From positions 21,337-85,336 of the forward strand of contig FLMG01000505.1 of NCBI GenBank assembly GCA_900088475.1: a DNA stretch of 64,000 nt, given 5' to 3'. The stretch is from Hyphochytrium catenoides (lineage: Eukaryota; Protista; Hyphochytriomycota). The notes beneath the pieces are model-generated. The model was given only the letters and a program-made list of their open reading frames with translations. It searched no databases and was not told the origin of the DNA. Positions within the stretch are counted from its first letter, which is position 1. Every line of letters starts with the position of its first letter. A program made the position numbers and the translations under genes. Shown piece after piece: positions 3,001 through 60,481 of the stretch.

Positions 3001-6000
3001 GCAGACGTGCAGCAGACGTGATTCTTAGGAAAAAAATACTCTTCAAAGGAAGTGAAGCACTCGTAAAGTCGCCTATGCGACCCACTGCCAGATGCCGCTT
3101 GGCCGACCGCGGGCTTGAAGGCTGAGCTCACAGCAGATGCGCAGTTCCTCACCGGTGTGGATGCTTCTAAATGCGTTTTGACTAGCTCAATGTTCCCTCT
3201 AACAGCCTCTTGGATGGTTGACGTCGCCTGAGCGATCTCTGGGCTGCTGGTAACCTGCTTGTGGCGGAACTGGACGGAAATATCCAGATTCTCCTTACCG
3301 CTGAGATTCTTCTGTCGCTCTAAAGAGGCCAAACAATAAAGATACCCGCAGAAGTGTCTTAGGCGTTCCAAATGGATATGGCTTTGAAGAGAAAAGGAGG
3401 TAGTGCACGGACCACGGAGTTCCGTTTCCTTCTCAGCGGAAGGTAGCAGCACAGCAGAACTTAGCAACGCAAGGGAGAAGAGTAGGAAACTATCACATGA
3501 CCACCATCGAAATGATCGTAGAAGATGCGGAGAGACCCGATTAAGAATAAGCTGGTCTGCAATTTATACCTTTCTCTTCTTCCTCGTCATCACTGAGGGT
3601 AAGTTCTGTCAGCCGTACATCTAGATGTGCACTCCGAGCTAATGAGGCGCTGCGAAGAGAGATAACATAGACTTAGCGCGAGGTTAAGAAGTAAGTGGAT
3701 TCGATGGAGATTGGCCAGAACATGATGCTCACAGAGCTGTTTTGTGGGTCGCTGGGGAGCTCATAGAATGTAGAGCCAATAAAAGAGTACCACAAGGTTG
3801 CAGGAGGCTGCTGCAATGCGATGGAGAGCAAGGAATTGTTTTCAGCACACACCTTTTGTTTACGTCGCATATATTGTCATAGAAGTTGAGGACAACAGGA
3901 TAATTCTTTCTGATGAAGCTATTGAAGTGCTCCATGAAAGGCTCTTTTGCACCGAATAGCACGTTATTTGCCTATGAACAACGTATCAGGGCCATAAGAG
4001 AGTTATTAGGCCCAAGAAGTGGTCAAAATGGCAACAGGTAGCCAAGGATACGCTTCCCAGCAAACTCAGTCCGGGCGGCCAAGGTAAGACTAACAGTAGA
4101 AAGCAGCCCAGTCCGAGCACAAGAGGTAGTAAGAACAAAGTATGGGGCCTTCAGAACCGTCAAGTACCAGATTTTGTAACATCTTCGCGACGAGCATGAG
4201 CGCTCGCCTATGTCCAGCACTAAGCACGGTTTGTTTGTGCACCAGGCCAAACTTTTGCGGTATCACGATCACTGGACAGACAAAGCGGAGGAAAAAGACC
4301 ACGCCCACTGCATTCTCGCCACTAGAGTCAAACCTAGAGATAGAGCATACAAGGAACAAATGAGCACAGGTGCTAAACTGATGGGAAAGAGAAAAGAGAG
4401 GCCAGAACAGGTCATGCTAGCACAACAGTGAATAAGTCAGTGATTCAGAGCTTCGTGCCATTATGACCTAGGGACAGCGCTGCACGGACCCCAGGGGAGG
4501 ATCGAAGCCAAATGGAGAAGACAAAGCCGAAGAATTTAATTTGCATCTTACTTGGCTGATGCCCTCTTGCGTACTTGCTCCGACAGCTGACGCAGGGTAC
4601 TTGGGCAGAACTCTGCGGAATCTAGGATACTGTAAGGGAAGGAGTCAGAGAATATAACATGTCTCACGAATGTCCTTCAACAGCCATGAGGTCACTTGGT
4701 AGTAGAATAGAACTGGTGGCAAAGAAGTCCCAGACCAATAGGACCTAGACATTCAAGAGCACAGCCAGACCCAGCTTGGCGTCCCACCTTTTAAGAAAGT
4801 CCCGAGCTGCTGTCAGAAGACGTTCCCGATTTTCTTTGAGATCCTCGCCAGGTCCCAAACGATCGGGATCGACCTATAGGGAAGGGAAGCGGGAGAGAGC
4901 CTTTATTAGAAGAAAAGGAGCTCAAGTGACCAAGGAGAGAGGAAGCAGAAAGGGGCACAGATCATGTTTCCGATAGAGGTAGAGGAGAGAGACGAGAGAT
5001 AAAGCAGGCAGGATGCAGGACGAAAGAGAAGTATGGGAAGTAAGGCCATCCAAACCTACCTCAAAGGATCCTGTCTGCTCCAGAATTCTAACCACGGGAT
5101 CGCGCAGCATCTCCAGGAGGTAAGCATGCCCAACCGCATGGGAAAAAGCACCAATCACCTGTGTAAAGCAAAGTGGGTTTTCTTGCCGAATGCCTCTCTT
5201 CTATCGTCTCTCTTCTACGGGAACAACCCTTTGCCCCTCTTCTTGTCTCTTCGCGTTAGCCCATCCTTCAGAAACCCCCAGATTTTCTAAGGTTGCCGCT
5301 CACCTTAGAAGACAAAGTGTTGGACCTAAGAAATCCTGAGGCCTGGTCTGACTCTCCAAGTTCGATGTCTATAATGGTCTCTACGAACTTCATCAGCCGC
5401 TTGTGGCTGTTCGAGCAGTCAAACGCCATCACAATAGACTGAGAAAGGTTTTCCATGTCCTGACGGATCTAAGAGACAGAGGTGTTTAAGCATGCCAAGT
5501 CAAGAGTTGCTTCCACTGGGCTATTAATGTCTCCTCTACTGTCAGAATATATATTTCCTTGATCGCAAAGTAGGTTATGCCAATGGTTCCAGTCCCTTAT
5601 GTTTGCATTAAACTCTCCTCGTCCCACGGGTAAAAGCGAAGTCGTCCTTGTATTGTCACATACCGGAAGAACGGCCTTTAGCAGTTGAAAGTCCGGGTCG
5701 TCCACCATGCAATAAAGCAACGGTCCCTTGGAGTTCTCCTCGACTAAGTACTGGAAGGATCAATAGAGACAGAGTCTGAGCAGAACGTAACATGGAGGGA
5801 AGAGGAATGCAAATGCGTTCCTATAAGCTACTAGCAGCTGTGAATAACCATCACAGTGTCCTACGGTAAGCGTACCTTCAGACACCCTTCTGCGTTCAGA
5901 TTTTCCAGCTGCTTAGCCTATACACGAGAGACAGATGTAAGGAGAAAGCGCAAGGGAGAAGAGACCATAGTGCACGCCAGAATTAAGGACATATCAGGTT

Positions 6001-6944
6001 GAAAGTCGATAGCGAGATCTACTATACTTCGTAAAATCATGCGCACCTGGTCTAACTCCCTCTGTCTTCGTCTCTCAGTGCGGCGCTCTGCCTCTTCTCG
6101 TCTCCTGGCCTCCTTCTGCACTTCGGTTTCTTCCTCATTTGCCTCCCCTGACTTTCCCTCCCTATATTTCTGCTTTCTCCTGTCTTTGTCGCTATTCTTC
6201 TTCTCCATCTCTTGCTTTTCCTTTTCTCCGTCCCTGGGGACAATTTAGGAGTTGTCAGGTAACAAGAGGGAACAGCTCGGAGATATTGCGGCCCCTTGAA
6301 TATCAGTGATAAAAGAGACAAGGATGGACATCGTGTTATGCTAGGGTAGGGGAGAGAAGCCACTCGCTACCTCCTCTTTTGCTTATCTGCAGAGCTGTCT
6401 TTTCTTGAGAGCCTCTCGGCGGATCGGCCTGGAGGAGGACTACCGGTGCGACTCGGTCGGCTGTCTCGTGGCGTCTCTCCTGATCAGCGGTAAGTCAAAT
6501 GTGAACAGGAGTGAATTCAGCACTGTAAGAAACATGACAGAGGAAGAGGAAGGAGAAAAGACTAGTAGACAAGGCGATATTCACCATGGGACGGCAGCCC
6601 AGAAGAATGAAAGAATAGACAGCGCAGCACGCCAATTCGGTGTACCGCGCTACACCGGAAGGAGAGTTATCACGGTTTGAGAGTGCGGGAGGGAAAAAAC
6701 AAGCACAAGGGCTACTAAGATGACTTCCCAGTGGGCCTGAGACGGAGAAAGTATAACACCTACCATTGGCCTGCCTAGAAGAATTGGAATCCATCATCGC
6801 CCTTTCCAACATGACGCTACCCTCGTCCTTAATCTCTTCCTTGTCCCCAATGGTTAGGAAAGAGTTGAAGATTTTCGTCATTTCCTTCTTCAGGCCGTTG
6901 CCGAACAGGCCTCCTCTAGGCTTCTTCTTCTCTTTGTCCTCCAT
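1..6944 (-). CDS. Multi-exon Ras GTPase-activating protein (RasGAP) with probable C-terminal START lipid-transfer domain; 3' end runs off the window
   Basis: RasGAP exons: 'GFLRSNTLSSKV' (arginine-finger region, ~5310), 'AVGHAYLLEMLRDPVVRILEQTGSFEV' (~5060-5140), signature 'FFLRFVCPVIVIPQKFGL...RRALMLVAKMLQNL' (4170-4320), 'ANNVLFGAKEPFMEHFNSFI' (~3910-3970). START-like exons: 'LNGWKFWKAHNEMVVSRFKD' (~600-770) splices in phase to 'RGWGIIKASSRDVYHTVADVSVRPRWDPMTVSASVVESIDEMMSIVHYVLESPSPFMKDR' (61-240). Ser/Pro-rich GT-AG exons lie between. ATG at 6944 is inferred. Confidence 0.8.
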
Positions 6945-7365
6945 GGTGCAGAGTAAGTCTCCTACCTGACTCTGCGTATCGCTCTCGAATAGTTACGTGG
7001 AAATCAAATCATCTTGACTTTGGATAAGCGCCAAGACTCTTAAGAGCTCGACCGACAATGCTCGCAAGAGGCGACCGAGCAAGAAGGGATGGACACGCTC
7101 CGCAATAGGTTTTCGTTGCTTCTTAACCCTTTCCTGTGCTATAGCGGGAGAGCTTTCAAAAGCAGCTTCTCCTCTCTCAGCCTTCTTTCGCTAGGCTGCT
7201 CGATCTCAACAAGAGGTAGCAGTTAGCTCTTCTGACAAGAGTGCTTTGTTTGCCCTCGTTCTTTCGAGCTCTGTCTGCCGATAGTCTGAGGCTCCATACT
7301 CTTCTATTGCTTGCTGTCTGCTCCCGCACTGACCCTCAAGTCTCTACATCTGCACTGACTCCCAG

Positions 7366-7389
7366 CTCTCTCTCTCTCTCTCTCTCTCT
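7366..7389. repeat. (CT)n microsatellite
   Basis: Run of CT dinucleotides upstream of the RasGAP gene. Confidence 0.85.
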
Positions 7390-9406
7390 GTGACGCTTTC
7401 CCTATGTCTGGCGTTATCGTCCCAACCTGATGATATTGACAAAGCCCCTTGGTGATACCTTTTCCAACTCTGTCTAGTGAGCCCTGATATGTACTCACTT
7501 AGCAGTAGTATCTAGCGCATGCTCTGTCTCGGTCTCACTGTTCCTGCCTCCTCCGTCAATGTTGGCTTTACGCGTCTAATACAGCGCCGTATTGAGAACC
7601 CTGGCCTAAGATCTACTTAAGGACTACCTAACATTATACCCAAACCTATTCTATCACAGTTTCAGTTCCAAAGCGAGCCAGAAGCCACAACCCGTACAGA
7701 TTGGCTATCAGTATGGATTTCATTCAAAACTCCTCTCATCCTTCTGATTTACGGGGTCGAAAGCCATTCTTAGAACCGCTGGGTGGGTCGAGAGCCACTG
7801 GGATTCATTCAGATTCCAAACAGGTGAGGAGATACTGTCCTCCTTCATTCTGACCCTGTAAGTGGGTAGGACACCCCTCCTCCTCCCTCCTCAGACCGGT
7901 GAACTAGCAGCAGAAAACCATCATCAAGAGTTCATGGGCGTTAGTTCATCGTGTGCAGTGCATCACGCACTTCTTACACTTCACGACAAGCGAGATCACA
8001 TGTGGAGATGGATGCAAGCATTCGACATGTGTTTATTGGATGAGGGCAAGCTGGCCGCCAAGAGGCGAAGAGTCCAGGCTCGTCAGCCGAAGCTGAAAAA
8101 GTCACAATATTGGATCGATAGAATGTAAGCTTTCTAGACGAGTTCAACTGGCTCTGATAATAATCTTATTGGTCTTCATGTAGGGCCGGCGGCCCGCAGT
8201 TGTTGGCCGCCTGGTCCGGGTTGCACATTGCGCCACTGCAAAGTGCACACTCATCATTGTATCTACAGTGCGGCGCCAACCTCACGATTCCATAAATAAT
8301 ACTCCATATATTTTTTTATAAAAATGACACTTGTATGCGATACATTGAGACCGCCACCAAAGGCCAAAGAAGACACAGCAGAACGGCAGATGAAGGACCC
8401 ACCAGCAGCAACTCACCTCGTCATAACGATGCAGCAGAAGAAACGGCAGGATAGGACCGGCAAAGATCATTGATGGTAGCCAGTAAAGGAAAGGACGCCG
8501 GAGGTAGGGACAAAGACAAGCAGAGGACTGGCGGAACGAGTAAAGGTTTATAAGAAGAAACAAAAGTATGTGTAAATGATGCAGACAACAGAAGAATCAA
8601 ATAGCAAAGTAAAGAGCTTTTAGTGATGAGTCCGGAAGTTGAACGCGGCAAGGCCGTAAAGGTCCGCCTGCAACTTTCCCTATTATTACCATGGCAAGAT
8701 ACAAGTCAACGAAGCCAGCCTTATCTGACTCAACTAGTAGTAGATGTTTCCAAAAGTAGACTGCCAGCTGCTGCCTCAGATGGTGTTTGTTGTGCAGCAG
8801 AAGGACCCGGACGGATAGGCCAGTACAACGAGTTGTTTATGCCGCATGCTGACGAGGTCGAAGAGACGATGAAAATTGTTTAGGACCACCGACCCTTGAA
8901 GGACGCTACAGCTAGCTGCCTAAAAACCAACAAGGAGGAGACAGCAGCACGACAACACAGGACAGACAGGGTTATTACTACCAGGGCAGCTCCCCGATAC
9001 GGAGAAAGCTCCAGATATTATCACATCAACAACCTTATTCGAAGAACTAGTGTTATTACTTCCTCCACCCGTTTAGGGAGGAAGGCATCTCTATAGAACT
9101 CTTTCTTCATCAAACATGCCGCATTCTCCTAATCCCTGCGTCCCCTGGTACTACGCATACTGTTGTGCCACGATCGCAAGCCTTTAGGCTGCTGCCATGA
9201 CGCCGCTGCACTCATCCAATCTGAGCCTCAGCAGTGCCTTATCACTTACTCCGTACTTGATTGAAAAAACCGGGGAAGGAAGAATGGCTTAGAGTAGTAG
9301 TACTACGAAGGAGGAAGACTGGGCTTTGGTCATCGTCATGGTGCTCCTCATCAGAACCCATTCTTATATTTAGTAGGCCGATAAACGTTGTGTACTCCTC
9401 CAGTAG

Positions 9407-9490
9407 TCCGCTGTACAGTTATAGGTCCAAGAGGAGGCCCGTTTCCGCATCATGTGATAGAATAATAATGTAGCAGTACTTGTACACAGG
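9407..9490 (-). mobile_element. Possible decayed piggyBac-like transposase fragment
   Basis: Minus frame reads PVYKYCYIIILSHDAETGLLLDL*LYSG, resembling the piggyBac 'P.KYG.K...LCDA.TGY..NF.IY.G' block. Short and interrupted by a stop. Confidence 0.25.
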
Positions 9491-9937
9491 CAGCACAGAC
9501 GGGATAGTTTCTTAGTGCCAGAAAAGACCCGTTAGACCAGCGTCAGACTATGGCCATTCTTATTACGGTGCTAGCCGCGCCAAACGCCTTGTGAGTCCTA
9601 CCAGTAGATTCACTGGGTAGAAATCTATAGACTTTTTTTTCTCGTCTGAGGAGGTCTTTCCATTCACAAGATATGTGTGGGTGTGCCTTTTCATAGGTCC
9701 GCTCATCAGTTCTTGAGATTAAGAGGAAGAGACTGGAGCTCTTCACTCGCAAAGGCAGTGAGTTGCTTCCAGATCCTTGTGCAGTCCCTTTCCCTACGTA
9801 ATGGATCCTATAACCAGCACAAGGAGCTTGGCCGCCCGTCCTTTCACCAAAGCCCATCCTGATCGCTTTAGGTTCGGCCCAGCTTCCCATTCCTAAACTT
9901 AGGAGTCAGCTATCAAACCCCCAAAGGCGCCGAAGAC

Positions 9938-12900
9938 ATGACGTTATTTGCGGCTCGAGAAGCGTGGGATGGCTCGTTAGGGATTCGCGCTCGACTGCCT
10001 GCGCGTCTGGCTTATATAGTCACGAGCAAGCGGCGGAGCTTGATCGTTGGATTGTTTGTTCTCTTTTTTCTAGATTACGTCATCAAGCATCCGAAGGTTA
10101 GTCCCAATGCTGAGCTGCTTGGATATCGTCTTTGTGTTCTCACACAGTATTGGTGTTCGTACAGGGCTTCTTAAGGCAGTCTCTCCTGATTTCAAGCCCA
10201 CAATTCGTGAATGAAGCTTGTGGCTGGGACTATGAGGCCTCCTGGACGATTGGAATAATGAAGGGAACGTCACCCCTTACTTTACGATTCCCAAAGGACG
10301 TTAGGAACCCAATAGTCACCTGCGCAATGGTGAAGGACGTAAACGTCAGCTTTGTGGCTGATCCCTTCTTATTCATCCCTTCCGAAACGCGGGCCTCACT
10401 TCATGATGAAGAAGCAAAGGCTGACTTTGATTTGGTCTTCGCACACCAGTCCACTTGGTTTTTGTTTTTTGAGCAGAAGAATCTACAACGGTACATTGGA
10501 GAGATCGGGGCACTGATGAGCATGGATAGTGGGCAAACTTGGCAAAGTGTGGGAACAGTCCTCAGAGAGCAGTTCCACTTGTCCTATCCTCTCGTCAAGT
10601 TTCACGAAGCCTCTCGAAGGTAAGTCTGCTGGAGCTTCGCTTGGGACCACGTAGTAAACGAACCATGCTTCTCCCGCTCCATGCCACGACGTTAGATTTC
10701 TGATGATACCTGAGACGAATGAAGCGAATGCTATTCGGATATACACGACATCCATTGAGGAGTTTCCAAGGGGTTGGGTTCTTCATAGGACCATGCTGAC
10801 GGGTAAAGACAGTAGATAGCCTTCCAAAGACTTCCTGAGCTTCGCTTACAATGGTTATCTCCTAGGAAAGGAGTTTGTTGATACATCTCCTGTCTTCTTT
10901 GAGAATACATGGTGGATTTTCACCACGGTCTCGGGGACATTGTATCTGTACTACACAGATGATCTTCTTGAGCCCTGGCAAGAGCATCCGAACTCGCCCA
11001 TCTACACGAAAGAAAAGCGCTTTGGGCGGAGTGCTGGACCTCCTGTGGTGTACGACAATTACATATACCGTTATGCCCAAGACTACTCCCGGTGGTACGG
11101 AGAGAAGACACATATTTTCCGTGTGACTGAGCTCAGCAAGACGCGTTATTCGGAAAAGCTTGTCCATACGGTGAAATGTGGCATAGGAGAGTGGTGCGAG
11201 TATCGACTTCATCACATCGATGCGCATGCACTGGAGACACATCAGTGGGTGGCTGTAGTCGATGGAGACAACCATCCCTACAACTATGAATGGAAGAAGC
11301 GCGAAGGCACGTGGACTGCACTGAAACGGATAGCATTGTTGTCTTTGTTTTTGACAATTATGCGCTTCCTCTGTTCAACGAAGTCGGATTCCAGGATGCC
11401 AAGGAGAAAGAGCTTGACTATACTAGTAGTTGGCGAGAGACGAACGTTCAGCCACATCCGGTCGACACTCAGCCGCTCTGTTGCTCTGGGCTTCGTGGCC
11501 GTGAACTCGCTTGTATTCCGTTCCAACAAAGCTCTCATAGAACGCTTGGCTCTGGTTGCGGACCTGTTAGTCTTCTACAGATTGCAGGTCTTAGCGTATG
11601 CAATTAGTTGGCTGGCGGCCTTCACAATAATTCTGCTAGGAGTCATGCCTCGCTTGTGCTGCTACGATTGTAGCTATGACCATACGATCTGGTCAGAAAA
11701 GTCAGCGACCTTGCAGGACTTAGTTATTGTGACTCAGGCTAGTCAGGGCTATTTCGATAGGCTGGAGAACTTGGTTGGATCAGTGCATGTCTGGGAGCCA
11801 CAAGCAAGAATCGTTATTTATGATCTGGGCCTAGCTCTGTGGCAGGTAATTGACTGGTGGACGCCTTCTACTGAGTATACTACTAACTTCTTATATATGT
11901 AGAGGCAGAAAGCACTCTGTTGGATGAATGTGGAAGTCCGGGAGTTCAACTTCACACAATATCCAGTCCACGTGAAAAGCCTATGGAACTTTGCTTGGAA
12001 ACCCCTTGTGATTGAGGATGCTTTGAGACTGGATTCTGCTATATTAGTGCTAGACGCGGGAGTTGAACTACGGCGAGAGCTGACGCCAATTAGGAGAGAG
12101 GTAGGTGAAGCTGCAATACCACCGGTGGTCTGTGATATCTAAGGCACACATGATATCCCAGCTCGTTCGACATGGCTATTTCGGCACCAATCAAGTCGGC
12201 TTCGTTTTGGGTGACACTCACCCCGTGACCTTGCGAAAGATCCTGGACAATATTCCAGAGTCACCTCCACCGGAATACTTTGCCAATAAGAAACTTTGTG
12301 CTGGTGGAATCCAGGGCTACCTTAGGCACTCAGCAGCCTGGCAACAAGTAGGATCGCGCGCCATCAATTGCTCGCTTGACCCAGAGTGCATTTCTCCCAG
12401 CTTTCCTGTTCGACAACACAACTATGACCAATCGGTCTTGAGCCTATTAATGTATACATATGGCTACAAATGCGATGATGAAGATCTATACGCGCAGTGG
12501 TTTCTAGGGCAGACGACTCCAGATGAGACCGCCAAGAATGACGTGGTCTTGGCTCTTCGTAAGTATAACCATCTAGGGCCATATCGCAAGCATATTAAAG
12601 TACAGGTGAGGTACCCGTTCTGTTGCACAAAGAACAAGTCTTAACTCTTTGACATCAAGCAGACGAACTGTACTCCATTGCAAAGCGCAAATAGGCACTC
12701 GGTTGTCGAAAGTAGCGCTCTTTTGGTCGATGAGGAAGTGAAGAAGTGTTTATTGGACAACAAGTATGTGATGACCGCCTGTGAAGAAGCCCTAGCGAAA
12801 TCAGCATCCACCGGTGGCATCACCTGGAGATTGAGGATGAAAGCTGGATGGAACCACGTCAGATTCTCCTGCTATAGAGCATTTTGGTGTCCTTGGGCTC

Positions 12901-12995
12901 ATGTCATTGCTGCATTTGTTACATTGATAGTCTCCTTTGCCTTAATAATCCCACGGAAACGCCGCCAATCCGCTGGGCATCCGAGATGGGATTGA
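9938..12995 (+). CDS. Multi-exon membrane protein: GINT1-type N-terminal beta-propeller + TM segments + DUF1647 putative glycosyltransferase domain + C-terminal TM
   Basis: Propeller motifs as in plant GINT1 N-terminus: 'CGWDYEASWTIGI..G.SP', 'NPIVTCA', 'SFVADPFLF', 'LFFEQK', 'FHLSYP', 'WQEHPNSPIY', 'YRYAQD...YG', 'HHIDAH...VAVVDGD'. C-terminal half has DUF1647-like motifs 'VIVTQAS..YF..L.NL..S', 'IVIYDLGL', 'YP.HV..LWNFAWKPLVI', 'LDAG', 'AGGIQG', 'C.LDPECISP', 'HNYDQSVLSLL'. GT-AG introns at ~10097, 10620, 10803, 11846, 12101, 12606. Confidence 0.85.
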
Positions 12996-13281
12996 TATTT
13001 ATAACGTAGCAGCTGACAACAATGCGGTGTACCTCACATTAGTATGTTGCGCTTATGAGCTAAGCGCTTATGATCACACATTGGTAGGTATAACTGAGGC
13101 TGGTCTTGTTAAAAAGTTAGCAGACCTGACGCTGCTGCTGGAGGACGTAGGTTGGGGAGGCACAACTCAGGTAACATGGTGGTCCACTCCCTAGGAACAT
13201 GTGCAACCTTGAAGCTATTGCAAGTTGCCATGGCTTACTCTTTATGAGCATGAGGAAAGGACTGCAAATCAGTATTCTGAG

Positions 13282-14805
13282 TCACGCAATGTGATCGTGC
13301 CTAGGCAAAGTATAGCTCTTCCGCCGTATGGCTGAGGGTAGTAGCTGCCTAAAGGAAGAATGGGATAATCTTCCGCGACAAACAAACATTCCTACCACAA
13401 CGCCTAAGAACATAAGGCGGATCAAGATGTACTTCACCCAATCGACTTCGTCCTCGATGTAGCCCGATCGGATGCATATCGCTAGTGCCGAGAGTCCACC
13501 AATCAAACAACTGGAGCCTAGCGGATAACCTTCCAGAAATCGATGGATCTGCAGCATATATGTGGTGTCTATGTTATGAAAGGTCATCCACATATCGTGC
13601 AAGTCTGCGACCTCATACAATCTTGGACCTCCATAAATTCGAAATAGAGATTCAGCCGCGCATCCCCAGAACTCGTGAGGGGGATACTGGTGCATCATAG
13701 GATGGGCCACAAGTCTTGTCCCTGTCTTCTCCGCACACTGGGAGACGGTGAGATCATGGTATATAGTAGAGGGACATAAGCCCTTGTGATAACCTTCGAT
13801 CATGGATGTGACAGATTCGCGGCTGAAAATTTGACCAGCTCCCAAGTGCAGATAGCCGAAAGGATTATCGCCAAACGCGTCTTTCGTCCCGATGCGAAGA
13901 GACTGCACAAAGTGCCAAAGCACATTCGGCCGCAGGTATGTACTTTCGTTGCACATAACAAAGAAGCTTGCTTTGGGAAACTCTTGAACAGCATGAGACC
14001 ATATCCTCCATGTGTCTGGAAGGGCTTCGACAGACTGGCGATATTTTTGAGTGGTGGATGACTCTAGAGATACTGAACCATCCGATGTTATGAAGCGGAC
14101 CTTATAACCCATGTTGGCCGCAGCCCCTCCCCAAGACCTCCGGACGGCCTCAGACTGAGCAGTTGAGGCGTCACCTGAGGTGAGGATAAGAATAGCCACT
14201 TGGTCAGGGCTTGTCAAGTGGCTTTGAGCATCGATAGGTGACGATCTGTAGCTTTGCAGAACTTTTTGAAGCATGTGAGTGTCTGCCTGGTATCGCACAG
14301 GATGCTCCCCCAGGGGACTGGGTTTGCATGCAGACGCCATTAAGCTCACAATCACAGATCGCAATGTAAAAAGGCCCAGAATAATACCGAGGGCCCATAA
14401 AGGCCAATGCCTGTAGTTCCATAGCAGGTGAAGCTGGTGACACCAGCGAGCACGCCTACTCCTGGTTTGATTCAGCATCGCTGCTAGATAGGAGGCAGAG
14501 AGGTGAGAAGTGTGCAGGAAGTCGGTAGAAGTACTGCTGCCATAGCCACTGTTCAGGGTGAGCAGCCAAGCAGCAGCAGGCCGTACTGTTCCCGCTGCAT
14601 GATAGTTATTACCCTTCCGTCCTATCTCCCTTCGGAATGGAGAGGTCCAGCCAAAGCTCTCATCGATCTGCTGAAGAGGAGGCAGAAAGCGCTTGGCCTT
14701 CGTCTCTTGATGCATCCTTTGACAGCGCGAAGTTACTCCGCGCCAAGCCTCTTGGGTGAGCAGGGCAGCAACCTGCAGACCGCCCTTCTCCAGATCTTGA
14801 TCCAT
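13282..14805 (-). CDS. Intronless GT31 (Fringe/C1GalT1-like) glycosyltransferase-fold protein with degenerate DxD motif
   Basis: 507-aa ORF. TM 'WPLWALGIILGLFTL', then 'VAILILTS...AVRRSWG', 'FFVMCNESTY' (canonical xKADDDTY), 'GYLHLGAGQIFSRESV' (canonical GYxSGGAGYVLSREA), 'HDLTVSQC' (canonical EDVxxGxC), 'MTFHNI'. Extra C-terminal TM. Confidence 0.8.
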   Translation of the reverse strand: MDQDLEKGGLQVAALLTQEAWRGVTSRCQRMHQETKAKRFLPPLQQIDESFGWTSPFRREIGRKGNNYHAAGTVRPAAAWLLTLNSGYGSSTSTDFLHTSHLSASYLAAMLNQTRSRRARWCHQLHLLWNYRHWPLWALGIILGLFTLRSVIVSLMASACKPSPLGEHPVRYQADTHMLQKVLQSYRSSPIDAQSHLTSPDQVAILILTSGDASTAQSEAVRRSWGGAAANMGYKVRFITSDGSVSLESSTTQKYRQSVEALPDTWRIWSHAVQEFPKASFFVMCNESTYLRPNVLWHFVQSLRIGTKDAFGDNPFGYLHLGAGQIFSRESVTSMIEGYHKGLCPSTIYHDLTVSQCAEKTGTRLVAHPMMHQYPPHEFWGCAAESLFRIYGGPRLYEVADLHDMWMTFHNIDTTYMLQIHRFLEGYPLGSSCLIGGLSALAICIRSGYIEDEVDWVKYILIRLMFLGVVVGMFVCRGRLSHSSFRQLLPSAIRRKSYTLPRHDHIA

Positions 14806-15306
14806 GACTTCAATATTTTGGTAATCACCTCAGATATCTTGGGTCATAACTCAGTTAACGCGGGTCAAGTCATCCGAATAATTCAGGTTGACGTTGAGTT
14901 AGGAAGGCCAATGAACTCTGTCATCAATTTCAACAAATGCTGCGGTAGGCGACTAGTAGAGGTCAAAACCTGGGTACCCAAGGATATTTCAAAATTATCC
15001 AGAGATACGCAGACAGCTCTTCAGGCTCCACAACTTGTCTGCCGGGCAGGTTGGAAGAGCTCTCTGTAGATCCTTGTAGATCAGAAGCCTAACTAGGAGT
15101 GAAGCTCCAGGATGACTGCCACTTCAACACGTCCAGTCGAAAGCCAGGTGTCACCGCACTGATCGAAGCTTCGTATGCAGTTCTCATGGCTATCACTGAG
15201 CCCTTGATAGAATAATCCGCCAGGCTACTTTCCCTTTAAGGAGGAGGCGCTTGCTGGTCTGGCCGTTGAATCCTTATCCTTAAGCAGTGGAAGCGCACAG
15301 CTGACG

Positions 15307-16467
15307 ATGGACGACAAATGCTATGTTGGCACTCATCTCTCACCCATAGAGAGTGCTAGGAAGCGTGTTTCGGATTGTCGGAATGGCTGCCCTGATGGTA
15401 TTTGCGATGACTTTTCCGACCTTTCAAAGAAGGAGCAGCTGCGACAGTCTCCAAGATTGGGTCTTACCCTTGTAGGGCTATATGGAGTTCTTGTCTCCAT
15501 AATATGCCTCTATCAATGCTCTCGCATAGACGATCTGCAACTGCAGGTTGTAAAGAGGATGCAGCCACCCTTCGCACTATCTCCGGAATATGGCGCCAAT
15601 AGATCGCATCAGGATGGTTGTGATCTATGCAGAAGTTCATCATCACGAAGGAGCTTGTCAGATAATGCTAGTAGGGGATATCCAGTTCCAAATTACGTGC
15701 ACTTTGTTTACGCTAACAAGCAAGACGCGGTTCCAGATCTTCCATATTGGGTTTATCTTAATATTGCGATGGCCAAGGATGTGCAGAAGCCTGAAAAGAT
15801 CTTCTTCCACTGTGTCCAGGAACCTCGGGGCAGATGGTGGGATAGGGTGAAAAGCTGGGTGGAGATGCATATCATTCGGGACGTGACGGAAATTTTTGGA
15901 AACCCTATATACCACAGTGCCCACAAAGCTGACATCATTCGGATGGAAGTACTGCTCAAGTATGGAGGTATCTACTTTGACACAGACGTCCTTCTGCTAA
16001 AGAATCTGACACCTCTACGAGCCTTCCCGTTCGTCATGGGAATTGAAGAACATGGGGTCGGCCTGGGAAACTCGGTAATGATCTCCGCCCCTGGGGCAAC
16101 ATTTTTGGAAAGGTGGTACGAGATGTATCGTACCTTCGATCACACCGATTGGGACTATCATTCAGTCCAGCTGCCATTCCACCTGTCTCAGGCTTATCCC
16201 ACGGACATTGTGCTTGTACCCAAGGCAGGATGGTTCTATCCCTTCGGAGGGGTGAAAATCAAGCTATTCGGAGACTCTATATTGGACAATTCTAACCATT
16301 GGGCTCAGCATTTATTCCACAACATGGTGAAGTCGAGATTAGATGTGGAGGTTACAGGCCCGAGTTACTTCTTCAGAAAGCGTAATACGTACACAGTGGC
16401 AATAGTCACACGCAACACCACGGATTACCCGCATGTCATGGAAGCCTTGACGGTCGGAGAGGACTAG
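15307..16467 (+). CDS. Intronless GT32 family glycosyltransferase (DxD sugar-binding; alpha-1,4-GT/SUR1/OCH1-like), type II membrane protein
   Basis: 386-aa ORF with TM 'LGLTLVGLYGVLVSIICLY', 'VPNYVHFVY', 'AHKADIIRMEVLLKYGGIYFDTDVLLLK', 'LGNSVMIS.PG..FL..W', 'WDYHSVQLP'. Confidence 0.9.
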   Translation: MDDKCYVGTHLSPIESARKRVSDCRNGCPDGICDDFSDLSKKEQLRQSPRLGLTLVGLYGVLVSIICLYQCSRIDDLQLQVVKRMQPPFALSPEYGANRSHQDGCDLCRSSSSRRSLSDNASRGYPVPNYVHFVYANKQDAVPDLPYWVYLNIAMAKDVQKPEKIFFHCVQEPRGRWWDRVKSWVEMHIIRDVTEIFGNPIYHSAHKADIIRMEVLLKYGGIYFDTDVLLLKNLTPLRAFPFVMGIEEHGVGLGNSVMISAPGATFLERWYEMYRTFDHTDWDYHSVQLPFHLSQAYPTDIVLVPKAGWFYPFGGVKIKLFGDSILDNSNHWAQHLFHNMVKSRLDVEVTGPSYFFRKRNTYTVAIVTRNTTDYPHVMEALTVGED

Positions 16468-18873: not shown

Positions 18874-21800
18874 TTACTTCTTAAGCCTGGCGAACCGTTC
18901 TAGCAACATCCCAGTAGTTGTTGCGGGTCTGTCTGTCTTGGGCTGGGTGTTGCCTTCCCTAGTCTCCGCCTGAGATAGCAGGCGAGAGCCTTGAAGGCGC
19001 TCTCGAAGTTCCCCTGCCGTCTGATACGAGAGATTCTTTGCGCTTGACGACTCCGAGAGACCTTGACGGCGTAACATCAAATGAGAAATGCAAAAAGACA
19101 CTTGCACTAGCCTGTGGGATGAACTACACTGACATAGAGCTCGAGAGATCTAGCAAACGGTGCGAGCCAAAGAGTGAAGACATAAAGCTGTGAAGCGAAG
19201 CCAGCAATAGGCCGCCCGGACACCAAAGAAAGTACCAAGTAGTTGATACTGTAGGAATACTAGAACAGAGTCATATCCACATTGTCTTCGAACTGACATT
19301 CCCTTGGCGTGAAAACCAAGACGAATAGTCAAAATCAACCTAAGCTTTACCTGAGGAGTGCCCCACTGTCTGACTGAGCTTCATCTTCAGCTGCCTCACG
19401 CGATCAAGTGTCTCATCCTGGCTCTCCAAGCCAGACTTGGCCTCCAAGGCCGCAAGACTGCTTGAGTTAAGGGTCAACGACTTCTGCTTTTTCTGATAGG
19501 AAAGGATCTATTGTCAGTCTCGAGCATACGCTCAGAACGTTGGCTAAAGACGACGGGATAGAAGGGGTGTCATGGAAGACGTGCAGGAGAAGGGCAAGCT
19601 CCACCAAACACCATGGGAAGCCAAGCAAATTCTTCTTTGCTGTGTTGGGACTCACCGTCAGTTCAAGTCGCTCGAGCTCCATCTTGATACGCCACTGGAA
19701 GGCCGAGCTTGCCTTACTGAGCGGCTGCGCGATGTCATATTCCGGGTGAGCTTTCTGTAGATTATACGCAGTGAGGACCCTGTCAAAGCTTAATGCCTTT
19801 TACCATATGTTTATGTAGAGCAGAAACGAAACAAGTGGAGAGAGGTACTCACAGTGAAGTCATAAAGGTCACGAATAGCTTGATCCGAGCCCGGGCTGTC
19901 AGCCGCTTCTGCCGAGATGGCTTTGAAAATACGTGCCAGTTCCTCATGAAGACTGCTCGAAATGTTGCCAGGTGTAACTACACGAAGACAATGGGGAGTG
20001 AGGGACTGCAAACTGGTGGATGATGTCCAGGACAGCTGAGGAATGGTTCTTTTTAGTACCTTTGCCTCCTTCTAATTTGATCCCTTTCGACTTCAACTCC
20101 TCGACGACTGCAGACGATGCGGGGAGCTGAGATCCAGCAATTTCCAGTCTCTCCGTGCCTCCTGAGTTCTTCAGTGCTTCAACAAAGGAGTAAAGCAGGT
20201 GCTTCAGGGCATTTCTGACGGGGTCCACTGGTGCCGCTTGGGCTTTGCTATCCTCTCGATAGAATTGGTCAATCGTCGATAGGAGGCGAGATGCGTCTAC
20301 CGTCAGGTATGGCTGTTTAGCTTGATTCTCTGCCTTCATTAGAAGTAGGAGGAGCTAGCGAAAGGGAAAGCGTCAGCAAGAGGGTGTTATACAGCATACT
20401 GCCGAGTTGTTAGCTCTAACAAGACCCCTTCCGCCCCCCCCCTAAAAACGATGTGCCTTGCACCGTCTAAAATCGTCCTGTCAACATAAACCAGCGGTAT
20501 GAACACTACTCATTCCTTCTCCAAGGACGTACGGCTAAGTACCAGACTATGATTGATACAGCTTCTGTTCACTTTTCGCTAATACCTTGACGGTGATTTT
20601 GGGTATCACGCCTTCTGAATCTTGATTTTCCTTGTCCTTATTGCAGACGGAAAGTAGACGCACGAGAGTGACTAGGGAAACCGTCCTATCAGTTTTTTCG
20701 GCGGCCTGCATGGCTAGTTTGTTCAACGCCCAGACGATCTTTTCTGCGTGCTCTGGATATTTTCCACCTGGTTTAAGCCTTGGATCCACCAGGTGTTTAA
20801 TGGCCTCACCTAGCATCTGAGTAAGCGAGTCCGAACCAATCTGAAAAGCAACCTGATGTCCCAAATACCGCCCGAATTACGGCGGATGAACAAGGTTAGG
20901 TGACAGCGGAGACCGATTTCGTATCAGAAGGCTGGCAGGAAACGATGACAGGGCAGAAGTACCCAACTCTTGACAAAGCCGAGAACGAGCTAATTGGTTC
21001 GAGGGGCAGCACTCAAAACGCGATATATTCCCTTCATCTGAGCGTTTTCAGAACATGCCTATAGCTGTCTTCGCTTACCTCAGTTTCTTTGAAGAGAAGT
21101 ACCATCGCAGAAAGAGACAGAGAAAGTACGTAGATATCAATTTCCGAATCGTTGGGCCCACTCGAAAACGATGCCCGCATCGCTCGCGTCAACTTTATCA
21201 GAAGATTGTCCACATTCGACACGAGAAAGTCCTTATCTGCAGCTTCAAGTGATGAGCCCTCCAGGTCACCCTCCTTGATCTGGCCTGTAGCAGATCCTGA
21301 CGCCATGGCGTGCACCGTTTTTATTGCTTCCTTGCCTTCCTTATATGCGAGAGAGGACTTGCTAACCAGCCTGGGCCCTCTTGTTCCCTCCAGTACCAAG
21401 AGCTTGTCCAGTCTTGAGAGCAACTCTTTGTGCATACGGGTTAGGGCGTCGTCAGTGCACCCATAAGAGGGGGAGGTTGATAGACCGGGCTTGTCGAGCT
21501 CCAACTGTCTAGCTACAGCCGAAGCGCCGGTTCTCGTCTTGTCTGCAGAATGGAACGGTTCGATTCTGGTATTGTCAGATTGAGGAGTGCTAGAGAAGTT
21601 GTTGATGTCGATGTGAGAATCGTCGTACTTCAGTGGGGAGGCATCTGTAAGCTCTTCTGGACCTGAAACTGGTGCAGGAATAGGAGGAGGAGGGCGATTC
21701 ACTAGCGACGGGGCAGCTTGCTTCGCGGCCATCGGCTCCGGCCTTGACAGAGAAGAGGACGGGCCAATAGTGGCGTATTTGACCTTCGCTTCGACCTTCT

Positions 21801-24800
21801 GGTGCTTCATCCTCTGCTCCAGCAGATCCTTTACCTTCTGGCTGTTTACTGGGCAAAGCTGATAAAACTTGGTCACGTCAGCATCACATTTCAGGTAGAC
21901 CGCCATCATCGTGCTCAGGGCACTCTCTCGGACATCTTTCTCAGGCGCGTCTACTAGCGCTACCATATCCTTCAGTGCTTTCTTGCCAGCGATACCATAG
22001 CCTAGGCCGTTGGCAACAAGTTGGAGTTGGATTTAGAGATATTGACTTTGCGAGCACAGTCCTCGTAGCCATGCCGCAACTTACCAAAGTTCTGTATGAG
22101 CTGTCCCATGAAGTCCAGACATGCAGATTTCGTTCTGGTGTTTTTGGAGGTCAGGCCTCCCATAACATAGGGAGAATACTTGCTTGCGGGGTAGATTTGA
22201 CTGATTAGCGTCATCACTTCACGATAAGAGTCCCTAAAGCGAGGCTTCTGTTGGCCACACTCCTAATGAGACGAGCTTTTGAGTCAGTTGAAGGGCAATC
22301 GTACAAGAGAGAAACCTAGGGTATCTACCTTGATGAGAGTTGGCAGAAAGATCATAGCCTCAACGTCATGCAGCTCGTAGGCAGAAGCTTTGAGCATTGT
22401 GAAGAGGGATATTTGGATCTCCAAGAGCCGAGCCAAAGCCTATGGACCGTCGCACATCAGTCATGTTGTCCGTTAGCCTTTACAAAGCAGCTTAATAGAA
22501 TCAGGTATGTTTCTCGGCAACTAACCTGAACATTGTTATCGATCATCCTTAAGGTGCACCATTTGAGGACAAGATCTAGTGAGTCCTTCACCTCTTCCGG
22601 CATTGTCGAGATCGCATTTGCCAAATCGTCCATGCCAGCCAAGATGCCCTTCTCAACAGAAGGGGCGAACAGCTTCGCTTCCAAATCAGGACTGAACAAC
22701 GCGGAACAGCGAACGTGACAGAAGAGGAACCGGAGAACGTTAGCATGGGTGCAATTGTACGCATAGTTGCAGAACTAGCTCGTGGTACTGAAATGTGAGC
22801 ACGCACAGCCATCCCTTGAGCCCTCATTAGCTTATTGATATGGGCAAAGCAATATTGAAGGGACAACCTAACTTGAACCCCACTTATGTCCAAATACACC
22901 AGAGCACGGTAAAAAGTTATAAGGTGCAAACGTCAACGGTGGCTATTGTCGTCACCTGATGAATGGCTTCCAATCGTCCTGCAACGATTGTTTGCAGGCT
23001 GCCTCATCCTTCGGATCCTCAAAGACCCATCTATTCCTCTTTGTCTTCTCCAAGCGTTGCGTTTTCTGGTTGTTTCTAAGCATCATAACATCATTGGGCC
23101 GACCATTAGAGACCTCCATAGGGGCACTAGGAGGTGGCTGACTTCCCGTTCCTCCTGGTGCTCCCACTCCAGCTGTCGAAACGGGTTTCTTTAGCGTGCC
23201 AAACTTGCTTCTCATCCCGGAGGTAGCCCGCACAGTGGAGGCTTTCCTTGTGACGGAGATAGGTCCTTCGGAGGCAGGGGCCGGTTTGTCTTCTACGTCA
23301 ATGGGCTCTGGTACGCCCGAAGACGATTCTCGGTTATCTGCGGCCTCTGGTACCAGGGGCGCAGCACTTGCAGGTTCGCCTTGCCCTCTTTCATTGCTCG
23401 CCGCTGCGGCCACATTGGCAAAGATTTTTTCAAGTATAGGACTAAGCGTACGCATAACCGCAGGCTTGACGTCTCTGCAGCCGTTGCGCACAGCATCAGG
23501 CCCCACGGATCTGGTGACCACCTCCAACACCTCCTGGGCTTTCTGTCGAGTAGCGGCGTTTTTGTCCTGCAAGCAAAGTATGAGAGAACCCACAATGGGC
23601 GTGAAGTCGATAGAGGTTCCTATTTTGTCGATGTTCTTGGCCATCCATACAAGTAGTTCTCCTGCAAAAGATAACGTGAAGAAAGAGTCATCATTGAGCT
23701 TCAGATCCATTTCCGAGAAGACAAGCCAACTGAACCCAAAGGTCTCCGTGCTACAATATGTAAGGGCCCGCTCTATCGGAAGACCATCAACTCACCTCTA
23801 CCGACCGGATTATTAAGAGCAGCAGGAAACAGTGTCATGAGACTATCAAAGCAAGCCGTGTGCGGCTTGCCTCCATGTACAATCCAGCTTTCCAGGCAAT
23901 CAATGGAAGCGCTTTGCATTACTTTTTTGTTGTCGCTTACACAGCCCAACACCTCTCCCATGCAAACCTTAGCGAACCTAGCACAATCTGGGCCCAAGCT
24001 CTGTGCGACCACACCAATCACTTGGGCGGCTTTCACCTTGAAGAGTTCGAGTAGGATAACAATTGGTTTGTCAAAGAGGACCCAATTTATGCGCAATATA
24101 AAGCAAAGTCCACCTTAAGATTTTACAATAAGGGTGGTCCAAATACAAAAGACCAATGATAGGGAAGGATGATAGCGAGCCAATATCGGCGGTCCAGAGC
24201 GGGCAGCGGTACGGAATCTTACCTTAAGGTTGGCATTTGAATCTGAAAGCCTGCCCTTAAGGCTCTTGAAGAGCACTCCAACGCTCTTGGTCGGTTGTAT
24301 GCAATTCCCAGTTTCGGCGCAGATAGCAACCACTTGTTCCATAGCTGCAAGCCGCTGCTGCCAGTCTTTGCTGTCTCCTTCCTTTTCCATCTTCTCTAGT
24401 AGATCTTTCGATATTTTCTTGGTAATGTCCACCCTCTCCAGAAGAGACGAAGATGACGCAATAGCTGCTAAGCTTTGGCCCTTGATACAGCGTTTCACGG
24501 AACTAAGGGCATTGACAGGGTCATAGCCCGCCTTACTGAATTCTGAGTCTAAGGACGATAGTAAGGCAGGCTTAAGGCCCTCCCCTATGATCGCCTTCAA
24601 AGCCGGCCCCATCTGCTTGTACAGAACACCTAACAGAGATATGGCATTGTTCTTTACCAGGGGGTTAGAAGCCTCTAAGCCGTAGGGCCCCTTCACATAG
24701 TCAACAACAGATCTTGCTCCACATTCTCCAGCACCAAAATCTGCGATGAGCTTTGAGATGAACTCTAGGGCTGCAGCATGCACCGCAGGAGCTTTGACAG

Positions 24801-59836: not shown

Positions 59837-60481
59837 ATGGGTTCTAATGTACTCCTTTCCCACGCTGGATCCTCGTTGAGCACCTGCAAGGGATCCATAG
59901 CAACATCGGGCTCTCGGTGTGCTCTGGGTAGTCACAGCGAACGTTTGATCCCAGAGGATTTGGTGCTCAGCATACTGCTTGGAATAGCATGGGGGCTCAT
60001 CCTTTTACGGATCCTCACATGGTACCCTGGTGAGCCATACGAGTATATTCCTGAGAGTGAGAAGCTTCAGAAGGAGAGGAAGGCAAAACTGGAGGCTGAG
60101 AAGCGGGATGCTACCCTTCGTTCTTCTGATGAGGGCCAGGCAGTTCCGCCGACACAGGAGGAGGAGCTTAACCGCATGGTGGCTAACCTCCCCCGGGATA
60201 GGATGAAGGCTTTGCTAGGTCTTGACGATCAAAAACTAAGTCAAATCATAGAGCAAGCAAAGAAGGATGCAAGAGAAGGAGTGGCCACGGATGACCAAGG
60301 TGCAAGAATGGCCCGCTGGCTTGACACGGCTGTATATGTTCTGCTCTTTGGCGCCCTCCTGTGGTTCACATCAAAAGAAGCCAGCGATTTCTTAACGTCA
60401 CTTTTTCCAACAGAGGCTCGGACACTTGCTGTGGGCCTGGAGAGAATGAATGCACTCCTTCCCCCGCCATGGAAATTCTAG
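59837..60481 (+). CDS. Hypothetical membrane protein (two hydrophobic segments, central charged region)
   Basis: Uninterrupted 214-aa ORF with TM-like 'LVLSILLGIAWGLILLRIL' and 'AVYVLLFGALLWF'. No family recognised. Confidence 0.6.
   Translation: MGSNVLLSHAGSSLSTCKGSIATSGSRCALGSHSERLIPEDLVLSILLGIAWGLILLRILTWYPGEPYEYIPESEKLQKERKAKLEAEKRDATLRSSDEGQAVPPTQEEELNRMVANLPRDRMKALLGLDDQKLSQIIEQAKKDAREGVATDDQGARMARWLDTAVYVLLFGALLWFTSKEASDFLTSLFPTEARTLAVGLERMNALLPPPWKF

Follow-up and report, generated by a model that had tools for sequence, protein, structure and literature searches.

Among eukaryotes, fungi and plants aside, it is rare for unrelated genes to form functional clusters. Why do three intact and mutually unrelated secretory-pathway sugar-handling genes adjoin each other at positions 9938-16467 of the window, our name for a 64,000-bp stretch of the genome of Hyphochytrium catenoides, a little-sampled protist that resembles the water moulds? 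Gene 1 (9938-12995, + strand) has seven exons and joins a GINT1_N β-propeller to a DUF1647 domain, gene 2 (13282-14805, - strand) is a single-exon ORF of 507 aa for a very divergent protein that is probably GT31/Fringe-like, and gene 3 (15307-16467, + strand) is a single-exon ORF of 386 aa for a motif-complete GT32 protein. Genes 1 and 2 converge, with a spacer of 286 bp (12996-13281) separating their stop codons. Genes 2 and 3 diverge, and the intergenic region of 501 bp (14806-15306) that separates their ATGs is a candidate shared promoter. The gene coordinates and spacing in the initial annotation are exact with these two gaps, and its view that the genes are not tandem paralogs agrees with the lack of any cross-similarity among the three proteins. 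It had also called the products membrane-anchored, and a Kyte-Doolittle scan indeed finds hydrophobic segments in all three; as to the families it had named, Pfam supports GINT1_N, DUF1647 and GT32 but GT31 only weakly, with Fringe below the cut-off. The flanking DNA is gene-poor as described, since no credible Pfam match was obtained with any of the 44 stop-free stretches that reach 60 aa or more at 5.5-9.9 kb and at 16.5-21 kb, while its supposedly decayed look could not be shown; notable repeats were looked for in these flanks and none were found. Overall composition and codon-position GC of all three genes are like those of the rest of the window and thus give no pointer to a joint import.

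The three gene products

Gene 1 runs from an ATG at 9938 to a stop codon at 12993-12995 and has about 891 codons. Its exon model (9938-10096, 10165-10619, 10696-10802, 10866-11845, 11903-12100, 12162-12605 and 12663-12995, + strand), with boundaries set by hand from the sequence and a frame map, sums to 2676 nt in frame, and the six introns are all GT..AG and 57-76 nt long. Pfam domains were matched exon by exon and not on the joined protein, and the profile coordinates continue without gaps at the exon joins. GINT1_N (PF24793), a five-bladed β-propeller of the GH32/GH43/GH130 kind, covers exons 2-4 (10165-11269, + strand), which match profile coordinates 64-119, 126-156 and 159-304 with E-values of 2e-23, 0.013 and 6.9e-24, respectively. 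A hydrophobic linker inside exon 4 (11318-11644, + strand; Kyte-Doolittle), which is predicted to cross the membrane at least twice (11318-11374 and 11588-11644), separates the propeller from DUF1647 (PF07801), whose matched part (11690-12013, + strand) consists of the tail of exon 4 (profile positions 52-99, 16.9 bits) and exon 5 (positions 111-140), with the intron at 11846-11902 inside. The cut-off is 25.7 bits, which exon 5 passes by itself with 27.1 bits. The domain probably extends further, through exons 6-7; a C-terminal membrane span follows at 12894-12950. Because the end of the propeller, the linker and the start of DUF1647 are all in one uninterrupted exon reading frame (10868-11845), the fusion is independent of splice prediction.

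What can be learnt from the plant protein after which the propeller is named? Plant GINT1 is GlcN(Ac)-inositolphosphorylceramide transferase 1, and its GT64 domain carries out the GIPC reaction. Gene 1 resembles it in the PF24793 propeller, for which it matches profile positions 64-304 of 304, and in a membrane-embedded linker followed by a second luminal module. That module is the GT64 catalytic domain in plants, whereas no gene 1 exon matches GT64 in Pfam at E up to 1 and DUF1647 takes its position. Therefore, GIPC activity is not transferable to gene 1 by homology from plant GINT1. It is to be noted that the propeller occurs widely among bacteria, where it belongs to polysaccharide loci. 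Bacterial stand-alone homologues (such as those of loci L041, L006, L009 and L094-L173) show 31-38% identity to the gene 1 propeller exons and share with them in alignment the motifs FVADPF, FHLSYP, PET.E, PW.EHP.SPI, RYAQD and HHID, while they differ in being unfused single-domain proteins of about 320-360 aa. Their setting is one of glycan synthesis, beside GT4 and CapD-like dehydratases, with Polysacc_synt_2 as nearest neighbour in 13 of 52 cases and GT4 in 9 of 52, and a profile built from them matches structures of GH32, GH130 and GH43. This survey shows the GINT1-named propeller to be common in polysaccharide loci and to have GH32, GH43 and GH130 enzymes as relatives, and it argues against taking "GINT1" as a sphingolipid marker. 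The other module is known from Caenorhabditis elegans, whose DUF1647 proteins are secretory and 340-410 aa long (PMC3534327). In the C. elegans clusters C13A2, K06H6 and T15D6, different GT families are mixed with DUF1647 genes (PMC7614267); the locus described here is like them in the DUF1647 domain, the secretory pathway and the mixed GT-family/DUF neighbourhood, but those clusters are larger, their family members are repeated, and a propeller fusion is not described there.

The protein of gene 2 (- strand) starts with a tail of 137 aa, which is followed by a membrane span (14338-14394) and the GT31/Fringe-like core (13573-14217); towards the C-terminus there are one or two hydrophobic segments. 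It scores 13 bits with Pfam Fringe (PF02434), below the cut-off of 21 (E = 0.066); a word search found no homologues, and phmmer against 1.8 billion representatives gave three matches, the best at E = 1.4e-4. A profile of three sequences, gene 2 and two Fringe-family relatives, aligns to the catalytic domains of C1GALT1 (1.7e-13) and B3GLCT (1.4e-12), and the language-model neighbours of gene 2 belong to Fringe/C1GALT1 and Cosmc clusters. By these comparisons of sequence the protein is likely a member of the GT31 (Fringe PF02434/Galactosyl_T PF01762) fold family; its fold model (pLDDT 42) is too poor for use. What sets it apart from C1GALT1, Fringe, B3GLCT and Cosmc is a score under the Pfam threshold, the near absence of detectable relatives, a long tail on the cytosolic side and additional hydrophobic segments at the C-terminus. 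Where its relatives and C1GALT1 carry DDD, the DxD metal/nucleotide-sugar site, gene 2 has N286-E287-S288 (13942-13950, - strand), as placed by the alignment and by a profile alignment to 7q4i, and it keeps Asp351 at the position of the GT31 'ED/DD' motif. With the DxD site gone, gene 2 may encode a pseudo-enzyme. Cosmc, the chaperone of C1GALT1, likewise lacks DxD.

Gene 3 (+ strand) has a signal-anchor span at 15457-15513, then a stem, and its catalytic domain, at about 15679-16341, has D225-T-D227 (15979-15987, + strand) as the DxD site. It matches PF04488 (Gly_transf_sug) above the cut-off of 23 bits, with 43 bits (E = 7.8e-11), and has 22 homologues with E-values down to 6e-44, and all the residues invariant among 20 aligned sequences are kept (H206, D209, R212, G220, G221, Y223, D225 and D227). 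The AF2 model has a mean pLDDT of 74, with values over 90 in the greater part of the catalytic core (residues 150-310). Its top Foldseek matches are the retaining GT-A proteins SetA, YeGT, glycogenin and LgtC (E = 6e-8 to 1e-5), so that the predicted fold is that of a retaining GT-A enzyme. GT32 includes the IPC mannosyltransferases Sur1/Csh1 and Gb3 synthase. Gene 3 is like the members A4GALT/A4GNT, Och1 and Sur1/Csh1 in PF04488, in the HKAD..R and GG.Y.D.D motifs, in type-II topology and in the predicted fold, but it differs from the A4GALT/Gb3 synthase subgroup in that no Gb3_synth C-terminal domain (PF04572) was matched at E up to 1. In the tree its branch is long and joins a group of unnamed GT32s from fungi and protists (SH-aLRT 95 for the clade with eukaryotic sequences); a language-model search places it near alpha-1,4-GlcNAc/Gal-transferase clusters.

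How might these products act? The comparisons above give the families, that of gene 2 as a likely one, and from them we infer the following activities. Gene 3 would be a type-II Golgi/ER membrane protein whose luminal, metal-dependent retaining GT-A (GT32) domain takes a hexose or HexNAc from a nucleotide sugar and attaches it in alpha linkage to a glycan acceptor. Gene 1 would be a multi-span protein holding two modules on the luminal side, namely the GH32/GH43/GH130-like five-bladed propeller, which stands alone in bacteria and is fused to GT64 in plants, and DUF1647, which would replace the transferase partner. Canonical sugar transfer is improbable for gene 2, with its putative GT31/Fringe fold lacking DxD, and it may be a Cosmc-like helper or a binding protein. 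Genes 2 and 3 may be co-transcribed from the 501-bp divergent spacer, the sole module-like feature that the anatomy itself suggests.

Why are the genes adjacent?

Since the genes are non-paralogous and their products all look like membrane proteins of the secretory pathway, a shared role in glycan building is possible. Do the genes belong together in other genomes? No GT32, GT31-like or DUF1647-like gene lies within 10 kb in any of 80 bacterial GINT1_N loci, and among 80 bacterial GT32 loci one has a GINT1_N gene nearby. The latter, L041, is an exosortase-type EPS operon with GT32, a deacetylase and GINT1_N, in which a GT32 of gene 3's subfamily lies two genes from GINT1_N. The closest homologues that genes 2 and 3 have in eukaryotes, those in the clade of gene 3 included, are distant relatives, and their neighbours are unrelated genes with no sugar transferase among them. 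Joint working of the three genes is not established, as none of the available tests gives it positive support. The likeliest reading, to which we give about an even chance, is that the adjacency is a neighbourhood of independent glycosylation genes, neither a dedicated pathway cluster nor a GIPC pathway. It rests on the lack of conserved linkage in bacteria, the unrelated neighbours in distant relatives and the host-like composition, where the negative evidence on linkage comes from distant relatives only. On the other side of the account of independent genes stand a low chance expectation, the C. elegans precedent (PMC7614267) and a shared 12-mer.

These three observations favour instead that the genes form a co-functional module, which we hold as a tentative possibility, clearly short of an even chance. 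The products would then act in one Golgi compartment on one lineage-specific protein- or lipid-linked glycoconjugate, genes 2 and 3 being served by a bidirectional promoter and gene 2 acting as a Cosmc-like helper or an atypical transferase. The tight gaps of 286 and 501 bp with the head-to-head arrangement of genes 2 and 3, the signal-anchor-type hydrophobic segments in all three non-paralogous products, and the bacterial EPS operon with its GT32 two genes from GINT1_N fit such a module, as do the mixed GT/DUF1647 clusters of the worm (PMC7614267). As for chance, our own estimate, which is not the result of a tool, is N*p^3 with an assumed 12,000-15,000 genes of which 1-3% are GT-like or CAZyme; roughly 0.01-0.4 triples of consecutive GT-type genes are expected per genome, so that by this estimate, under narrow definitions, such a triple is uncommon under random gene order, though the adjacency may be due to chance. 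The 12-mer is common to the upstream regions, occurring exactly at 15205-15216, in the spacer of genes 2 and 3, and at 9455-9466, upstream of gene 1, where about 0.03 such matches are expected for two 500-bp stretches; against its weight, its distances to the two ATGs differ, at 472 bp and 91 bp, and no wider similarity between the two upstream regions was found around it. The module is further opposed by the trio not being found together in any relative examined, with 0 of 80 in the reciprocal bacterial test, and by the missing DxD of gene 2.

A more specific proposal, that the locus builds the head group of GIPC or another glycosphingolipid after the manner of GINT1, SUR1/CSH1 and Gb3 synthase, had been the pointer of the initial annotation and has been weakened by what the proteins contain; we regard it as improbable. 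The domain of gene 1 named for the N-terminus of plant GINT1, the membership of IPC mannosyltransferases and Gb3 synthase in GT32, and the language-model placement of gene 3 near alpha-1,4-GlcNAc/Gal-transferases would suit it. Nevertheless, gene 1 has DUF1647 in place of GT64 and a propeller that is widespread in bacterial polysaccharide loci, gene 3 lacks PF04572 and falls among unnamed fungal and protist GT32s, gene 2 lacks DxD, and no sphingolipid genes were seen in the window. The phosphosphingolipids reported so far from oomycetes, moreover, are CPE and CAEP (PMC9174665). Might the locus rather be a remnant of a bacterial polysaccharide operon, with GT32 and GINT1_N acquired en bloc and introns and membrane anchors gained later? 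L041 does combine GT32, a deacetylase and GINT1_N in one exosortase-type EPS operon, and genes 2 and 3 are intronless. Yet gene 3 belongs to a clade with eukaryotic sequences (SH-aLRT 95) and not with L041, the propeller, with 30-33% identity to L041 and 38% to other bacteria, is no nearer to the former, GC and codon-position GC fit the host window, and GINT1_N is present in plants too, and such an origin appears very remote.

Meaning for glycan biology

What stands firmly is descriptive, namely a propeller joined to DUF1647 inside a single exon, a GT31-like protein that is close to an orphan and lacks the metal site, and a motif-complete GT32. DUF1647 and the GINT1_N propeller are both uncharacterised modules, and plants fuse the propeller to GT64. 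It is rather unlikely, though worth stating, that the locus is a stramenopile cluster of non-paralogous genes for glycan assembly, in which the propeller-DUF1647 fusion, a DxD-less GT31-like helper and a GT32 are regulated together, in part by a bidirectional promoter, and make a single surface glycoconjugate specific to the lineage. If this were true, DUF1647 and the GINT1_N propeller would for the first time be placed in a functional context outside plants, and there would be a route to the pathway of an unknown surface glycan in a stramenopile.

Layout of the locus and structure of gene 1

The window is eukaryotic, with a GC content of about 49% all along, and the three genes lie where the initial annotation had placed them. 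Gene 2 (13282-14805, − strand) and gene 3 (15307-16467, + strand) each consist of one open reading frame, of 507 and 386 codons, respectively; the spacer between genes 1 and 2 measures 286 bp from stop to stop, and that between genes 2 and 3 measures 501 bp from ATG to ATG. As had been claimed, they are not tandem paralogues, and neither a paralogue nor a relic of any of the three is found in the rest of the window. A search against NCBIfam gave no useful match. The flanks had been described as gene-poor and decayed. They contain no recognizable domain, repeat or Rfam family, and thus the first half of this description holds while the second is not borne out. Farther away are large open frames for a TOG-domain protein of XMAP215/CLASP type (24115-26574, −) and a poly(ADP-ribose) glycohydrolase (29306-31273, −). 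Because these are ordinary housekeeping neighbours, the run of glycosyltransferase (GT)-type genes stops at three. A RasGAP-START gene is another of the flanking genes. Further open frames, 200-310 codons long and without a Pfam match, are seen at 21034-21966 (−), 22952-23710 (−), 34023-35942 and 59837-60481 (+).

Gene 1 (9938-12995, + strand) is split into seven exons, which were placed from the printed sequence and the frame map at 9938-10096, 10165-10619, 10696-10802, 10866-11845, 11903-12100, 12162-12605 and 12663-12995. Separated by six GT..AG introns of 57-76 nt each, these exons add up to 2676 nt of coding sequence. Profile and sequence searches were carried out exon by exon. In Pfam, the GINT1_N profile is matched at positions 64-119 by exon 2, at 126-156 by exon 3 and at 159-304 by exon 4; for DUF1647, the last part of exon 4 matches positions 52-99 and exon 5 matches 111-140. 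Since the matches run on across the exon joins, they support the exon model, and they confirm that the gene encodes a GINT1 propeller joined to DUF1647. It is to be noted that a single uninterrupted exon frame (10868-11845) carries the last part of the propeller, the first part of DUF1647 and, between them, a hydrophobic linker of at least two spans, so that the fusion does not depend on splice prediction. An anchor at the N terminus and a span at the C terminus are also predicted, and both globular modules would be luminal provided that the linker passes twice through the membrane. A search with exon 4, to which a length filter was applied, returned only propeller proteins of bacterial size, and exons 5 and 6 matched no PDB sequence. 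No exon shows a Pfam match to GT64, and for this reason gene 1 does not encode a GINT1 enzyme.

The GT31-like and GT32 neighbours

How firmly can the other two genes be assigned to their families? The product of gene 2 scores 13 bits against the Pfam family Fringe, for which the cut-off is 21. A word search gave zero matches, an identical-protein look-up gave no record, and exhaustive phmmer against 1.8 billion representatives gave three marginal matches (best E 1.4e-4). Two of these are Fringe-family proteins, whose accessions we take to resemble those of dictyostelid assemblies. A profile built from gene 2 and these two relatives matches C1GALT1 at 1.7e-13 and B3GLCT at 1.4e-12, and a language-model search agrees with this. 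Probably, the fold family is GT31, as the three-sequence profile indicates, with the Fringe score making the assignment weaker than had been claimed. In the alignment, gene 2 has N-E-S at the site of the DDD of its relatives and of C1GALT1; farther downstream, the Asp of 'ED/DD' is retained. The structure model (pLDDT 42) was too poor for a structure search. The gene seems to be alive, because its 507-codon frame stays open, and its product is most readily understood as a GT31-like membrane protein of a non-canonical or non-catalytic kind.

Gene 3 is a GT32 gene as annotated, with a 43-bit match to PF04488, 22 homologues at 33-47% identity, and all of the invariant residues kept, including D225-x-D227. 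A confident model of its catalytic core has retaining GT-A enzymes as the nearest solved structures. No Gb3_synth domain is found by Pfam, and an identical-protein look-up gave no record. Weak Pfam matches to TcdA_TcdB and Caps_synth reflect the generic GT-A DxD block, and a relationship to toxins was rejected. In a quick maximum-likelihood tree, gene 3 sits on a long branch of unsure placement in a 13-row clade (SH-aLRT 95), together with proteins of Cryptococcus and Cetraspora and two from eukaryote-like contigs. For genes 2 and 3, which lack introns, a foreign source was rejected from the composition and the tree. On a compact contig of eukaryote-like or virus-like character, the GT32 protein P0005 (loci L001/L002), which has a long extension at its C terminus, is encoded next to Methyltransf_24, a sulfotransferase-like gene and two genes with AP2 domains. 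Many GT32 homologues are encoded on densely coding metagenomic contigs with a GC content of 16-24% (L022, L025, L026, L028, L037, L038, L040, L048, L049, L057 and L062), which could belong to giant viruses or very AT-rich microbes.

Linkage of the three genes

By our rough N*p^3 estimate, which assumes 12,000-15,000 genes of which 1-3% are GT-like or CAZyme genes, 0.01-0.4 runs of three GT-type genes are expected per genome. Chance adjacency is still conceivable, since any such run would be flagged by a reader, and that the three genes are independent neighbours is a reading to which we give an even chance. A true co-functional module of all three, as the initial annotation had proposed, is rather doubtful. 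It has a precedent in C. elegans, where genes of different GT families and DUF1647 genes are clustered together, with unclear meaning (PMC7614267). However, the points that could be tested gave it no support, and the functional cluster is a hypothesis. For none of the three genes, gene 3 included, was a close relative found in protein collections or metagenome contigs. Where the genomic context of a eukaryotic relative of gene 3 is available, the neighbours are unrelated (such as PAT1, GST, E2F, a kinase, a methyltransferase and AP2), and the same is true of the two relatives of gene 2. Of the 80 GT32 loci taken from metagenomes, one has a GINT1_N gene nearby, and none of the 80 GINT1_N loci from bacteria (1.36 Mb, out of at least 573) has a GT32, GT31-like or DUF1647-like neighbour. 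Genes 1 and 3 have a 12-mer, TGATAGAATAAT, in exact copies on the + strand upstream of each (9455-9466 and, in the spacer between genes 2 and 3, 15205-15216), and the 64-kb window has no further exact copy. These lie 472 and 91 bp from the respective ATGs and show no wider similarity around them, and the 12-mer was rejected as evidence for a shared promoter element.

The single positive locus, L041, is a bacterial exosortase-type exopolysaccharide operon (3706-15362) with the order Wzy-like, double GT4, GT2, GH123-like, GT32, polysaccharide deacetylase, GINT1_N propeller (two genes downstream of the GT32), GT2, exosortase EpsH and DUF3485. Among the loci surveyed, GINT1_N occurs together with a GT32 of the same subfamily as gene 3 in this one only. 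Import of the genes from a bacterial operon is hardly credible. A role in a sphingolipid pathway, making glycosyl-inositolphosphoceramide (GIPC) or similar lipids, had been suggested by the initial annotation, and is very unlikely. This pointer is weakened by the missing GT64 in gene 1, the missing Gb3_synth in gene 3, the loss of DxD from gene 2, and the polysaccharide loci in which the propeller is set in bacteria. Indirectly, the phosphosphingolipids reported from oomycetes, ceramide phosphoethanolamine and ceramide aminoethylphosphonate, also speak against it (PMC9174665).

Partners of the GINT1_N propeller

Stand-alone relatives of the propeller are found in at least 573 bacterial genome stretches; among these matches, loci L094-L173 come from hosts such as Omnitrophota, Acidobacteriota, Planctomycetota and many cyanobacteria of the Nostocales. 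The nearest neighbours of the bacterial genes (26 loci, n=52) are mainly Polysacc_synt_2 (CapD-like) dehydratases, in 13 cases, and GT4, in nine, and flippases, nucleotidyl-transferases and one priming sugar transferase are also seen. Thus, sphingolipid enzymes are not the only proteins to carry the propeller. The bacterial proteins, combined into a profile, match solved five-bladed propellers of GH32, GH130 and GH43 (best E 2.9e-6), and motifs common to the bacterial propellers are also kept in the protist domain in the alignment. From this likeness, the GINT1_N domain itself may be catalytic. Its partners differ among lineages: in bacteria it adjoins GT4 and other genes of polysaccharide loci, in plants it is fused to GT64, and in gene 1 it is fused to DUF1647. 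Since the propeller stands beside GT4 in the one case and is fused to GT64 in the other, DUF1647 may, by 'Rosetta-stone' logic, be regarded as a candidate transferase.
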